Assembly (NCBI RefSeq): GCF_022045235.1
Contig: NW_027266275.1
Coordinates: 71,920,001-71,984,000, forward strand
DNA from: Haliotis cracherodii
Lineage: Eukaryota
Length of the DNA: 64,000 nucleotides
Direction: 5' to 3'
The translations under genes and the position numbers were made by a program. This document shows, one piece after another, positions 4,188 through 63,000 of the stretch. The first letter of the stretch is position 1. Each line of letters starts with the position of its first letter. Under the pieces are notes generated by a model that saw only the letters and a list, made by a program, of their open reading frames with translations, ran no database searches and had not been told where the DNA came from.

Positions 4188-7100
4188 TTATGGTATTTTA
4201 TCGCTCCTTCCCCTTGTGTCTGTTTCAATCACACGCGCGATCCACGCCAGGTAGGACTTGACGCGAGTGTACAGGCGGGGCTCGTCAGGCTGCTCACATC
4301 CGGTCCCCCACGAAGCCAGTCCAAACAGTCGCCATCTACCGGCCCGGAAACATACGAACGGTGCGCCGGAGTCGTCCTGTACAAAGACAGTGAACCATGT
4401 TCATTCCTATGGATTCAGTAGTGTGAAAAATCAAAATACAAAATGTTATGACAAGTATTTTAAACAACAATGTCTTAAAAATAACGGCAACTATGGTTTT
4501 CATATCACCGATACAGTGGCTTTTTCAAAACCTTATATCTGTCTGTCCCCTACAGTATGTAGCTCACCTGGCACGTGCTCCTCTTGTCTCCAGTTTTAGA
4601 GACAGCACACATGAGCCTTGGGCCACTATTCTCCTGGCATTAGCCCCGCCCCCTACAGTATATAGCTCACCTGACACGTGCTCCTCTTGTCTCCAGATTT
4701 AGAGACAGCACACATGAGCCTTGGGCCACTATTCTCCTGGCATTAGCCCCGCCCCCTACAGTATATAGATCACCTGACACGTGCTCCTCTTGTCTCCAGT
4801 TTTAGAGGCAGCACACATGAGCCTTGGGCCACTATTCTCCTGGCATTAGCCCCGCCCCCTACAGTTTATAGCTCACCTGACACGTGCTCCTCTTGTCTCC
4901 AGTTTTAGAGGCAGCACACATGAGCCTTGGGCCACTATTCTCCTGGCATTAGCCCCGCCCCCTACAGTATATAGCTCACCTGACACGTGCTCCTCTTGTC
5001 TCCAGTTTTAGAGACAGCACACATGAACCCAGGGCCAACATTCTCATGGAACCAACCCTGGCATATCAAGCTGCTTTCTACTTGCGTCTGTTCCTCCTGG
5101 AGGACCACGTGACCTCGCCCAACTGGCGGGAATGGAAGATAAAACAACAAACATTAATCTATTCTAGACCTGACAAACCAGTGATTGATACTACGAGCAA
5201 TGCTCCTTGCCACTGAGTCACCTCGTACGACAAGCATGTTGCTAGGGACCTATTTTAACCAAGACTCCATACGGTGATGTGATGCAAGTTAATCTAAATA
5301 TATCCAACGTACACAAGTAGCCGGAACGGACTGCACCGGTAGTCATTCATTCAGTCACTCAGTCGGTCATTGATCCACAACGTTATGATTAACTCATCCA
5401 CTCCACTGTCCGACACACTCGGCCGCTCACTCAGCCACTCATTGTCCCACTCACTCGGCCACTCATTGTCCCTCTCACTCGGCCACTCATTGTCCCACTC
5501 ACTCAGCCACTCATTGTTCCACTCATTGTTCCACTCATTGTCCCACTCACTCGGCCACTCATTGTCCCTCTCACTCGGCCACTCATTGTCCCACTCACTC
5601 GGCCACTCATTGTTCCACTCACTCGGCCACTCATTGTCCCACTCACTCGGCCACTCATTGTCCCACTCACTCGGCCACTCATTGTCCCACTCACTCGGCC
5701 ACTCATTGTCCCACTCACTCGGCCACTCATTGTCCCACTCACTCGGCCACTCATTGTCCCACTCACTCGGCCACTCATTGTTCCACTCACTCGGCCACTC
5801 ATTGTTCCACTCACTCGGCCACTCATTGTCCCACTCACTCGGCCACTCATTGTCCCACTCATTGTCCCACTCACTCAGCCACTCATTGTCCCACTCACTC
5901 GGCCACTCATTGTCCCACTCACTCAGCCACTCATTGTCCCTCTCACTCGGCCACTCATTGTCCCTCTCACTCAGCCACTCATTGTCCCACTCACTCGGCC
6001 ACTCATTGTCCCTCTCACTCAGCCATTCATTGTCCCACTCACTCGGCCACTCATTGTCCCTCTCACTCGTTCACTCATTGTCCCTCTCACTCAGCCATTC
6101 ATTGTCCCACTCACTCGGCCACTCATTGTCCCTCTCACTCGGCCATTCATTGTCCCACTCACTCGGTCACTCATTGTCCCACTCACTCGGCCGCTCAGTC
6201 AGCCACTCATTGTCCCACTCACTCAGCCACTCATTGTCCCTCTCACTCAGCCACTCATTGTCCCACTCATTGTCCCTCTCACTCAGCCGCTCATTGTCCC
6301 TCTCACTCAGCCACTCATTGTCCCACTCACTCAGCCGCTCATTGTCCCACTCACTCGGCCACTCATTGTCCCACTCACTCAGCCGCTCATTGTCCCACTC
6401 ACTCAGCCACTCATTGTCCCACTCACTCGGCCACTCATTGTCCCACTCACTCGGCCGCTCATTGTCCCACTCACTCAGCCACTCATTGTCCCTCTCACTC
6501 AGCCACTCATTGTCCCACTCATTGTCCCACTCACTCAGCCACTCATTGTCCCACTCACTCGGCCACTCATTGTCCCACTCACTCGGCCGCTCATTGTCCC
6601 ACTCACTCAGCCACTCATTGTCCCACTCACTCGGCCACTCAGTCAGCCACTCATTGTCCCACTCACTCGGCCGCTCATTGTCCCACTCACTCGGCCATTC
6701 ATTGTCCTACTCACTCGGCCACTCAGTCAGCCACTCATTGTCCCACTCACTCGGCCACTCATTGTCCCTCTCACTAAGCCACTCATTGTCCCACTCACTC
6801 AGCCACTCATTGTCCCACTCACTCAGCCACTCATTGTCCCACTCACTCAGCCACTCATTGTCCCTCTCACTCAGCCACTCATTGTCCCACTCACTCAGCC
6901 ACTCATTGTCCCTCTCACTCAGCCACTCATTGTCCCACTCACTCAGCCACTCATTGTCCCACTCACTCGGCCACTCATTGTCCCACTCACTCGGCCACTC
7001 ATTGTCCCACTCACTCAGCCACTCATTGTCCCACTCACTCAGCCACTCATTGTCCCACTCACTCAGCCACTCATTGTCCCTCTCACTCAGCCACTCATTG

Positions 7101-60000: not shown

Positions 60001-63000
60001 GCTACAGTACTTTATATTCCTGATTTTACCCTAAAATTTGAAAAATGAGAATTATTCATTCAAATGTAATTCATAAAAATTGTGAACGTCATTAGTCTTT
60101 TCAACTTCCTGTTACTCGTCCACATTTTCTGCCTGCAGCACATGGCAAGCACACTGCCTTCTGATGGAAATAAAAGACTTAATTGTTGCTAATTAACAAA
60201 GTGTGATCCTGGACCAATACTTATTATTTAATTAATATATGATGAACTGTCACCACTATTTAAATGATAACTGAACAATATTTCTAGATTCGATACATTC
60301 TACACCTGGAAATTGATGAAAGCGCAGTGTTCCATAAAATATCTTCGAAAGAATATAATATATTTTTTGCCAGTCAAACTGCAATCCCCTTAACAACAGT
60401 TGCTATTTCATGTCTTTATCACTTTGAATATTTAATTACTATCAAAACATCTAAATATTTTTGAAGACCTAGAAAACTGATAACACACACTGTTGTCCCC
60501 CACATGCCAACAAAATCAACAACTGATCACAAATAATTCCTGCAAAAGTTGACAATGTAAAGAAAGAAATATATATTAAATTAAATGTTATTACCATTCA
60601 ACTGACATTACTAATTATCCTATAATATACACACATTTTTAAGTATTCTCGGAGGAATCAGATGTTAAGGGTATCGAGAATCCTGTTGAGCAAGCTGTTG
60701 AGGGGTCACGATTTCTGTTCCATGGGGTACCAAATTCAAAGAAGTTATTTCCAGTTTTGTTACCAGCCTATTAGTTTAAATTTCATTAAAACATTTTCCT
60801 CTGTTTATTAACTGAATACATCTGAGACTTCTATTACGATTTAGGCATCATTTGGGTTTACTTTGAACATCTTCAAAATTCACGTGACCCAACAATTTGT
60901 TTACATTTAACAACCAAGTTGGAAGTTCTAAAAATCGTGAAATGATCTGCAAGCTGTCCTCATAGTTATATGAAAAGTTCACTGTTTGTACACATTGCCA
61001 GTATTATGTTTTTTAACATGACCTGTGCACTGATGCCAAAGCGGCAGCCATTTTCAATAAGCCATACTTTTGTAAGAAACGGTAATTTTCTATCTGCGAT
61101 ATCTCGATGAAATATCCACTAAATTTAGGTATTTTTGTATCGTCAAATATTTGTCGAATATCAGAATATGTCGTCATGTCGAAATTGACCCGTCACAGAT
61201 GTTGGAACGAGCTATTATTTGCAACTCTGTGAATATACTCCAAACCAATATTGATCCAAACATCATTGATAGCTGTGAAATGTTCAGCGGAGTTACTGTT
61301 AGTTGCCCCCTGTGTTTGAGGACTTCTTTTAATTTTTAACCAAATGATCTCCGTGATATTGAGATCCAGAGACTGCGCCGACCATTCACTCACATTACTT
61401 GCTGATTTGCAACCCCTAACTCCCGCATCCGACTGTGTAATAACTAAGGCAAGCAGACAACATCAGCTGACTGTCACGTGACTTTCTTGTTCTAAATATA
61501 GCACATGATTACGCTGGGATGTACTAGTGTTTAACACTTCGCAGCACAGATTTTGCTGAGTGTTCTGTGTCTACTAACCGTATATATATTATTTGATTAG
61601 TTTTAACTTAGGCATGTATCATGCTGTATATTTGATGTTTCAGGCACCAGCAGTTCGGGAAGAAATCTTTCCCCACCATGAGGAGTACCTCATGTTACTC
61701 CAGGAAAAGAACAGGTAAGCCGGAGAGTTTATGGTTATGGTTATAACAGGTAATCTTGATAATACATGGTTATAACGGGTAAACTGAAGAATGTATGATT
61801 ATAACAGGTAGTTTGGAAAATGTATGGTTAATAAAGGTAAACTGGAGAGTGTATGGTTGTGACAGGTAAACTGGAGAGTGTATGGTTGTGACAGGTAAAC
61901 TGGAGAGTGTATGGTTGTGACAGGTAAACTGGAGAATGTATGGTTGTGACAGGTAAACTGGAGAGTGTATGGTTGTGACAGGTAAACTGGAGAGTGTATG
62001 GTTGTGACAGGTAAACTGGAGAACGTATGGTTGTGACAGGTAAACTGGAGAGTGTATGGTTGTGACAGGTAAACTAGAGAACGTATGGTTGTGACAGGTA
62101 AACTGGAGAGTGTATGGTTGTGACAGGTAAACTGGAGAATGTATGGTTGTGACAGGTAAACTGGAGAGTGTATGGTTGTGACAGGTAAACTGGAGAGTGT
62201 ATGGTTGTGACAGGTAAACTGGAGAGTGTATGGTTGTGACAGGTAAACTGGAGAACGTATGGTTGTGACAGGTAAACTGGAGAACGTATGGTTGTGACAG
62301 GTAAACTGGAGAGTGTATGGTTGTGACAGGTAAACTGGAGAATGTATGGTTGTGACAGGTAAACTGGAGAACGTATGGTTGTGACAGGTAAACTAGAGAA
62401 CGTATGGTTGTGACAGGTAAACTGGAGAACGTATGGTTGTAACAGATAAATTGGAGAAGAGTATATGGTTATATGGTAAGGCAGCCCAAGGCGATTGGGG
62501 GCAGGGTAAGTCTCTAGTTCCCTATGTCTTGAGAGCCCTCTAAAATGAGGACCGGTTACACACAGTAGCTATTAGTGTCTCCCAGTGACACGGACCCATG
62601 CTTGCTGTATGAGGTGACGATGCTTGTCGTAAGAGGCAACTAACAGGATCAGGGGGTCAGGCTCGCTGACTTGGTTGATGCATGTCATCACATCCCAATT
62701 GTGTAGATCGATGCTCATGATTTATATCACTGGATTGTCTGGTCCAGACTCAATTATTTACAGACAGCTGTCATGTAGCTGGAATATTGCCAAGTGCAGG
62801 GTTAAACAACAAGCAGACACAGAACACTAGTATGTCAATCAATTACTGCCTCTGACAAGTACCACAAATACATTTACACAGTTTCTACTGCCACACAACA
62901 ATACAGATACATAAGTTAGGTTTCAGTATGGGAACTAAATACATTGATCATGTCCCACATTAGTAGAACTGCATGTTGTGCACACAGGCTGATTAAGAAG

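Follow-up and report, generated by a model that had tools for sequence, protein, structure and literature searches.

Minisatellites in which each unit straddles an exon-intron boundary, so that a splice site is copied along with it, are known from amphioxus as 'mirages' (PMC3087553, PMC3902484). These two papers, which cite Canestro et al. 2002, place them in Adh3, the globin genes BflGb6/9, TnC and PGBD5. Normal splicing is kept, donor-side as well as acceptor-side cases are found, and length or somatic instability has been demonstrated (PMC3087553, PMC3902484). The 37-bp VNTR in intron 7 of human F7 is of the same kind, and experiments on it have shown that the position of a donor, not its strength, decides which one is chosen (PMC1557585). 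Within the abalones, a 27-bp array in intron 3 of a TSSK1-like gene is length-polymorphic between individuals (PMC6905558). Finally, the Rogers model derives intron gain from tandem duplication across an AGGT site (PMC3265369) and has been discussed for mirages (PMC3087553).

We analysed a 64-kb stretch of DNA from the black abalone, Haliotis cracherodii (the window), in which 14 donors were confirmed and arrays of this type lie in three genes: a protease homolog, TSEN54 and a KATNIP-like gene (Table 1). The first-pass annotation had reported five arrays at exon ends and had not recognised them as a named class; the amphioxus mirages and the F7 VNTR supply that class. TRF recovered all five at the places claimed, with units of 103, 41, 26, 50 and 29 bp, 5-63 copies and 85-96% matches, and each is a head-to-tail array with a unit of minisatellite size (~10-160 bp). 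The further claim that every unit carries the exon end and the donor holds for the 103-, 41-, 26- and 29-bp arrays, where 8-65 exon bases plus a GT donor recur in each unit, but for the 50-bp unit a 24-nt gap has to be allowed before it crosses the exon-intron boundary. In gene orientation, the periodicity continues into the exon for ~65 nt in the 103-bp array, for 15 nt in the 41-bp array and for 11 nt in the 26-bp array.

Table 1. Tandem arrays and the RNA-supported exon in the window
Feature	Coordinates	Strand	Basis and remarks
103-bp x4.9 array	4547..5049	-	TRF and periodicity; end of exon 11 (5122-4980)
24-bp GTGAGT-rich array, ~100 units, protease intron 10	5426..8058	-	TRF; absent from the first-pass list
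29-bp x41 pyrimidine-rich array	8466..9660	-	TRF; absent from the first-pass list
40/41-bp x17 array	10504..11221	-	TRF and periodicity
26-bp x14 array	21928..22302	-	TRF and periodicity
53-bp x17 array, protease intron 3 (internal)	22465..23383	-	TRF; without exon copy
14/28-bp array, 4.8 kb, TSEN54 intron 6	43865..48672	-	TRF; unit ttaccctgtcag acceptor-like
21-bp x48 array, filling TSEN54 intron 4	49898..50902	-	TRF, P0001
50-bp x63 array, TSEN54 intron 2	51626..54758	-	TRF; 96% of intron
TSEN54 exon 2	54763..54927	-	RNA contigs: joined to exon 1 (57220-56883), exit at 54762/3
29-bp x25 array	61707..62475 (TRF 61737-62458)	+	TRF, periodicity

The likeness to the amphioxus mirages is close: in both, an exon-intron boundary lies within the unit and the splice site is thereby multiplied while normal mRNA is made, units of 10-160 bp differ between genes, several arrays may occupy one gene, and a general occurrence in the genome is suspected. 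The abalone, however, is a mollusc and not a cephalochordate, its arrays reach 63 copies and 3 kb, and its exon-containing cases are all on the donor side, whereas those of amphioxus occur on both. In the abalone, donor-bearing arrays also outnumber arrays of control motifs genome-wide among the matches listed (see below). The TSSK1-like array shares with ours the genus, the intronic location and copy numbers in the tens, but neither an exon end nor a splice site is part of that array as described (PMC6905558).

In the protease homolog, the 103-bp unit consists of the final ~65 nt of exon 11, the donor cag/gtgagc and ~38 intron nt; its three decoy donors are each identical to the real one, and the exon after the array begins at 4376 (DDSGAP). 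The 40/41-bp unit combines 15 exon nt (acagtgcttcagcag) with the donor gtgacc, has CACA microhomology at both edges and lies at a real donor that follows base 11206. The 26-bp unit combines 11 exon nt (catgttcacag) with gtagat. Its real donor follows base 22292, the last of exon 4 (22366-22292), which holds the end of an SRCR domain. Junctions in this gene are backed by continuity of the trypsin profile (positions 4-45, 43-131 and 179-220) and by the motif TCQ/DDSGAP. On the opposite strand, the diverged first unit of the 29-bp x25 array spans the end of exon 61644-61714 and the donor cag/gtaagc of intron 61715-62987, and agrees with the consensus at 24/30 positions, 8 of them exonic. The label KATNIP-like for this exon is that of the first-pass annotation, made from the sequence alone; Pfam and Atlas searches with it returned no match.

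At the TSEN54 50-bp array, the donor ctt/gtaagt follows base 54763, the next exon begins at 51517, and strict periodicity sets in only at intron +5. With a 24-nt gap allowed, the exon tail and donor align with the unit at 22/26 positions, including the exact 8-mer ggtagaac, and the exon tail and the unit start are alike at 10/12 positions; these alignments make it probable that this array, too, carries exon-end copies. Spliced RNA contigs from two species (2553, 181 and 1531 nt) agree in leaving exon 2 at the first donor. The NCBI Sen54-like protein P0001 also supports the TSEN54 junctions (...PRVERL/GGLVQG and ...LFLTET/TVLEVY). Splicing at the authentic site is therefore kept at this array, and domain continuity indicates the same, indirectly, for the other four. 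The claim that only the first donor is productive has contig support at one array of the five: the contig comparison covered 54250-60200, and contigs hide rare isoforms. As in F7, the first unit spans the exon-intron boundary, the donors downstream are identical and, in the TSEN54 array contigs, the most upstream one is used (PMC1557585). The F7 VNTR, however, has 5-9 copies at one locus, as against up to ~60 copies at many loci in abalone, and first-donor use in abalone is known from RNA contigs at one array and not from mutagenesis.

We then considered whether the additional donors have a function. Decoys that match the real donor in strength are present at four arrays (3, 15, 9 and ~100 of them), so that position, not strength, must decide between them; in the contigs, which cover one array, only the first donor is seen, with rare use of others possible. 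Read-through from the real donor reaches an in-frame stop at codon 6, 2, 3, 2 and 2 in the five arrays, within the six codons claimed, and use of a later copy would give a stop-containing mRNA. Such stops are nevertheless no special feature of the arrays, as GTRAGT yields them at most introns anyway. The first-pass annotation had also suggested that the arrays could serve as landing pads for U1 snRNP, as NMD-coupled decoys or as sites of recursive splicing, and selection would keep them for this purpose. The GT is indeed kept in 58/59, 22/22 and 15/15 copies, and the TSEN54 array is present in a sister species too. However, the retention of GT follows from the homogeneity of the arrays: the donor 9-mer ranks 90/103, 29/40, 26/26, 29/50 and 4/29 in conservation among the copies, and neither the GT nor the donor 9-mer is better conserved than other positions of the unit. 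Together with the use of the first donor only in the RNA contigs of the one array covered, and with the lack of good donors in the 21-bp and 53-bp arrays of these genes, this makes retention by selection for such roles very improbable.

Collapsed or mis-joined repeats could in principle have produced these arrays, since assemblies of tandem repeats are error-prone and no read examined spans a whole array. Three lines of evidence leave this explanation with hardly any credibility. Of the 31-mers sampled from a stretch that is 65% array, 53-73% recur in DNA runs from three different studies; a contig from the sister species runs from the exon into the array, with array bins at 4-7 times the depth of unique sequence; and the junction agrees with both the RNA contig and the NCBI model.

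Five further arrays occupy the same introns, and the arrays are not confined to donors as had been proposed: two begin 8-10 nt past the donor, two end 25-48 nt before the acceptor and one is internal. The 24-bp array in protease intron 10 has its real donor, gag/gtgagc, after the last exon base 8148, with degenerate copies from ~+10 and a clean array from ~+90, and finishes ~294 nt short of the acceptor at 5123. The 21-bp array of TSEN54 (donor act/gtaagt after 50921, next exon start 49886) spans +8 to 12 nt before the acceptor; by eye only, it has some likeness to the start of the next exon. On the acceptor side, the 29-bp x41 array has an acceptor-like tatatatacag in every unit and stops ~48 nt upstream of the exon 10 acceptor (exon start 8416), and the 14/28-bp array (donor after 48822, next exon start 43838) spans +148 to 25 nt before the acceptor. 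The internal 53-bp array begins at +70 from its donor (last exon base 23454) and finishes ~95 nt before the acceptor. No array in the window contains an acceptor plus exon start, the acceptor-side arrays halting 12-48 nt short.

The affected introns are 60-96% array, with only 20-500 nt of unique sequence left. Short ancestral introns would by themselves explain part of the coincidence with donors. Under a null of this kind, the expectation is 2.0 donor-spanning arrays, against 5 observed (P=0.016), and 2.6 array starts at or before +10, against 7/10 observed (P=8e-4); the window was chosen for the pattern, and both P values are biased accordingly. With that bias, the coincidence with donors is more than chance even under the geometric null, and the arrays show a bias towards the 5' end of the intron.

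The wider genome was surveyed on one chromosome with a tandem-octamer test, in which three perfect AGGTRAGT octamers at 18-48 bp spacing were required and distinct loci were counted among the first 100 matches listed. Among these, donor-octamer arrays reach 2.0 loci/Mb, compared with 0.29-0.40 (0.36)/Mb for three composition-matched control octamers, a ratio of 5.7 (P=4e-7), or 4.1 (P=0.0015) without a possibly shared 45-48 bp family; acceptor-octamer arrays among the matches listed are rare (0.16/Mb). The single donor octamer is no more frequent than its reverse, and base frequency thus fails to explain the excess of arrays. Raw match counts (donor 7,884; controls 5,157-14,459) were discarded as a measure because a few long arrays dominate them. 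In an unbiased set of RRM exons (30 loci, 20 usable exons), one intron opens with an array at +5; genome searches with four Pfam families added no loci to this set. Donor-bearing arrays hence look common genome-wide, the loci being known from the octamer pattern alone and not from exon adjacency. The genome-wide process put forward in the first-pass annotation gains from the 4-6 fold excess among the matches listed and from the one RRM intron in 20, but part of the coincidence is geometric.

Could geometry account for all of it? In a minisatellite-saturated genome with short ancestral introns, random placement would give donor-spanning arrays without any donor-specific process or filter. In a random 200-kb sample, 33 tandem arrays do cover 15% of the sequence, including a 10-kb stretch that is wholly 179-bp satellite. 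In that sample, a donor motif is found in 11/33 units against 7.6 expected (not significant), and a screen of upstream ORFs gave no clear mirage, one hit being a coding proline-rich repeat. The high array content of the affected introns and the 2.0 donor-spanning arrays expected under the null itself fit this explanation as well. The observed numbers, however, exceed that null, the donor-octamer arrays stand 4-6 fold above matched controls among the matches listed, and acceptor-spanning arrays are absent despite a symmetric geometry. We therefore regard geometry alone as unlikely.

Most probably, the arrays are minisatellites of the mirage (F7 IVS7) type that arose by slippage, persist because they are tolerated and have passed a donor-side filter. 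Tandem duplication of a segment straddling the exon end and the 5' splice site would have come first, probably through microhomology-mediated slippage (the CACA flanking the 41-bp unit being an example), and unequal exchange would then have multiplied and homogenised the copies, swelling introns from ~50-300 nt to 0.6-5 kb. If the spliceosome chooses the most upstream donor, the extra copies stay intronic and are removed with the intron. Acceptor copies upstream of the real acceptor would be more disruptive, so that arrays may reach or cross the donor yet would end before the acceptor, and would be skewed towards intron 5' ends. The slippage origin, the neutrality and a selective filter behind the donor/acceptor asymmetry are what we infer from these observations. 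It is not obvious how a neutral filter would place 7/10 array starts no more than 10 nt from the donor when the whole of the 5' two-thirds of the intron would be open to them; moreover, amphioxus has acceptor-side mirages, and the asymmetry is therefore not universal. As in the Rogers model, tandem duplication multiplies splice signals, but here the intron was pre-existing and has only been lengthened, and no new exon or intron is seen.

The base composition of the arrays bears on a mutational alternative, in which transcription-coupled events at the 5' splice site, where introns begin G-rich (R-loops, a G-rich non-template strand, stalled forks), would favour the seeding or expansion of tandem duplications. 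On the sense strand, G is abundant and C scarce in each of the seven arrays on the donor side (GC skew +0.14 to +0.74). The pair on the acceptor side is rich in C (-0.65 for the 29-bp x41 array and -0.19), and the internal array is neutral (-0.03); the genome-wide donor excess among the matches listed is also what such a bias would give. However, the skew may just mirror the local sequence that was amplified, as the 5' end of introns is G/T-rich and the 3' end pyrimidine-rich, the array units are unrelated in sequence, and R-loops are without direct evidence. We consider a mutational bias decidedly unlikely, somewhat more so than geometry.

Extrapolated from the loci among the matches listed, the strict consensus octamer alone would correspond to ~2,400 arrays, ~2,000 of them above control. 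It is conceivable, though we doubt it, that thousands of arrays have been seeded at 5' splice sites, either by a process physically coupled to the donor (such as template switching linked to transcription or R-loops where the intron begins G-rich) or by selection for U1-binding arrays in repeat-inflated introns; splice donors would then be birth sites of minisatellites and not tolerated bystanders. If the excess holds against real annotation, the genome would offer thousands of natural F7 experiments, with serial identical donors of which only the first is used, and a large test bed for the positional choice of 5' splice sites. In addition, the arrays bear on the birth of minisatellites and on the growth of introns from ~100 nt to kilobases, and in practice both gene predictors and short-read assemblies of mollusc genomes are liable to be misled by them.

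Running TRF over the 64 kb yielded about 14 large minisatellite arrays, together covering ~19 kb, and recovered in place all five of the arrays that the first-pass annotation had located at exon/intron junctions; the donor-array observation is real. That annotation also held that every unit carries the exon end together with the donor. When periodicity was tested across each exon/intron junction, read on the gene strand, this held for the 103-, 41-, 26- and 29-bp arrays, but it is only probable for the 50-bp array. The 103-bp unit comprises ~65 exon nt, the donor cag/gtgagc and ~38 intron nt; in the 41-bp unit gtgacc is preceded by 15 exon nt, and in the 26-bp unit gtagat by 11. 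The first unit of the 29-bp array has diverged (24/30 against the consensus) and spans 8 exon nt and cag/gtaagc. Periodicity in the 50-bp array begins no earlier than intron position +5, and the TSEN54 exon tail plus donor can be aligned to its unit (22 of 26 positions) only when a 24-nt gap is allowed, so that a donor/exon copy in this unit is probable from the alignment. In-frame stops do follow the real donors as claimed, at codons 6, 2, 3, 2 and 2, but they are not special, being the usual outcome of a GTRAGT intron start.

Five additional arrays in the same introns had been missed, some of them acceptor-side or internal (see table). Arrays take up 60-96% of the affected introns, which would otherwise measure roughly 50-300 nt, two of them more. 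The sense-strand composition of the arrays tracks their position in the intron, with GC skews of +0.14 to +0.74 in seven donor-side arrays, -0.65 and -0.19 in two acceptor-side arrays and -0.03 in the internal one. The start of TSEN54 exon 5 (ggtgtactatggtggcgtt, 49860-49886) looks like the 21-bp unit (ggggtacatggtggtatt), and by this resemblance the 21-bp array may have derived from the acceptor-side exon.

Arrays, genes and repeats located in the window
Feature	Position	Strand	Context
103-bp array	4547-5049	minus	protease homolog
40/41-bp array	10504-11221	minus	protease homolog
26-bp array	21928-22302	minus	protease homolog
50-bp array	51626-54758	minus	TSEN54 intron 2
29-bp array	61737-62458	plus	KATNIP-like exon
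24-bp GTGAGT-rich array	degenerate copies from ~10 nt past exon-10 donor		protease; by periodicity
21-bp array	+8 to 12 nt short of acceptor		fills TSEN54 intron 4
29-bp pyrimidine-rich array	stops 48 nt before exon-10 acceptor		protease
14/28-bp array, 4.8 kb	stops 25 nt before exon-7 acceptor		TSEN54
53-bp array			internal to its intron
TSEN54 last exons	43838-43781, ~43509-43404, ~42720-42516	minus	beyond the 4.8-kb array
LDL-receptor class A exon	142-288	minus	another gene
38 bp x23 and 31 bp x31 arrays	1399-3262		between protease last exon (ends 4191) and LDL-receptor class A exon
Tc1/mariner-like transposase reading frames	23995-24890	minus	protease homolog, in the intron separating exons 2 and 3
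26-bp array	26502-26687		upstream of protease exon 2; no adjoining exon identified
61-bp array	29430-30149		upstream of protease exon 2; unit includes gtatgtgag; no adjoining exon identified
Opsin-like GPCR gene, at least 3 exons	36914-40248	plus	7tm_1 match (E=3e-43); none of its exons adjoins an array
Dispersed repeats	55030-55760, 58030-58830, 59420-59830		dozens of genomic copies, 79-95% identity; contig depth very high

Protein searches were run one exon at a time. The protease exons match positions 4-45, 43-131 and 179-220 of the Pfam Trypsin profile, leaving no room for extra residues, and the 26-bp array comes after the end of an SRCR domain (Pfam); in this homolog WVLTAAQC replaces the catalytic His motif and DDSGAP replaces GDSGGP. 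With the largest TSEN54 exon as query, we retrieved an NCBI Sen54-like protein of H. cracherodii reading ...PRVERL/GGLVQG, ...LFLTET/TVLEVY and ...DATSTR/DLLSRL, exactly the junctions deduced from the DNA. Use of the first donor at the 50-bp array is seen in Logan contigs from three probable RNA runs (two H. cracherodii, one relative): they connect TSEN54 exon 1 (57220-56883) with exon 2 (54927-) and depart from the latter at 54762/3, which is that donor. A sister-species DNA contig spans the TSEN54 exon 2/array junction, ending 28 nt inside the intron, and in the run it comes from the depth of array bins is 4-7x that of unique sequence. We rejected the possibility that the arrays are an assembly artefact, since 53-73% of the words from a stretch that is 65% array are present in DNA runs of three studies.

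The donor copies themselves are no better conserved than the rest of their units, the donor 9-mer ranking 90/103, 29/40, 26/26, 29/50 and 4/29 among the 9-nt windows. Decoys equal in strength to the real donor number 3, 15, 9 and ~100 at four arrays; despite them, the first donor is the one seen in RNA contigs at the one array examined, the 50-bp array of TSEN54. This resembles the human F7 IVS7 VNTR, in which position decides among identical donors in favour of the one farthest upstream (PMC1557585), although that result came from mutagenesis and ours from RNA contigs.

Since the ancestral introns were short, a random seed duplication would frequently span a donor. Under a null that adds up the expectations for each of ten arrays lying within confirmed introns, five donor-spanning arrays were observed against 2.0 expected (P=0.016), and seven beginning at or before +10 against 2.6 (P=8e-4), in a window itself picked for the pattern. 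A random 200 kb of the genome held 33 arrays making up 15% of bases, a figure that includes one 10-kb stretch (L009, G000:C8:1857930-1867929) consisting wholly of 179-bp satellite; units with a donor motif showed a slight excess only (11 against 7.6 expected), and the sample yielded no clear exon-linked array. Among 20 multi-exon RRM exons from a Pfam search, one (locus L044) has a donor-side array, 30 bp x28, running from +5 and occupying 90% of its intron, and none has an array abutting the acceptor.

Genome-wide, we searched for three AGGTRAGT consensus donor octamers spaced 18-48 bp apart and took the number of separate loci represented in the first 100 matches of the listing, all on one chromosome arm; these loci are known from the octamer pattern, not from exon adjacency. 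On this count there were 17 donor loci in 8.3 Mb (2.0 per Mb), against 12 in 30.2 Mb, 11 in 31.4 Mb and 4 in 13.9 Mb for three composition-matched controls (pooled, 0.36 per Mb). The ratio is 5.7 (P=4e-7), or 4.1 (P=0.0015) once we exclude loci with periods of 45-48 bp, possibly members of a single dispersed family. The lone octamer is not commoner than its reverse (86,737 vs 103,310), and acceptor-like octamer arrays occur at 0.16 loci per Mb. The first-pass annotation's proposal that something general is at work in this genome finds support in donor-bearing arrays being 4-6 times as frequent genome-wide as the controls, but the coincidence is partly the geometry of short introns, which accounts for 2.0 of the 5. 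Given this excess and the residual, unexplained clustering of arrays toward the 5' ends of introns, a donor-coupled mutational process may be involved.

The arrays had been thought to fall in no named class. However, two amphioxus reports already call tandem repeats across exon-intron boundaries 'mirages': Adh3, globin, TnC and PGBD5 are reported to carry them, splicing stays normal, their length is unstable, and they are suspected to occur throughout that genome (PMC3087553, PMC3902484). Abalone intronic minisatellites varying among individuals are also on record (PMC6905558). The abalone arrays belong to the mirage kind; what is new is the phylum and the high frequency. On the likeliest account, a microhomology-mediated tandem duplication across a donor would start an array, unequal exchange would then expand the duplicated units, and the result would be tolerated because the first donor is the one used; acceptor-side equivalents would be removed by filtering.

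Several further features were observed. The TSEN54 gene occupies the entire 42516-57220 (minus), only part of which lay in the region first annotated. A 2553-nt RNA contig of sequencing run X15 carries 698 nt 5' of TSEN54 exon 1 that are absent from 54250-60200; they could be a further 5' exon, read-through from elsewhere or part of a chimeric contig. At 1208-1342, shortly ahead of the 38-bp array (1399-2257), 133 consecutive N mark a gap or masked sequence. Additional transposon-like ORFs were noted at 13400-15300 and 16900-17800, and a foldback or MITE-like inverted-repeat pair at 25880-26390, upstream of protease exon 2. The loose-end consensus at 59595, within a dispersed repeat, includes GGTTCGATCCC, which suggests a tRNA-derived SINE. 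Finally, another stretch of the genome sample, L018, holds two paralogous genes (1229-1618 and 5550-5996) in which a signal peptide is followed by a proline-rich, 81-bp coding repeat.
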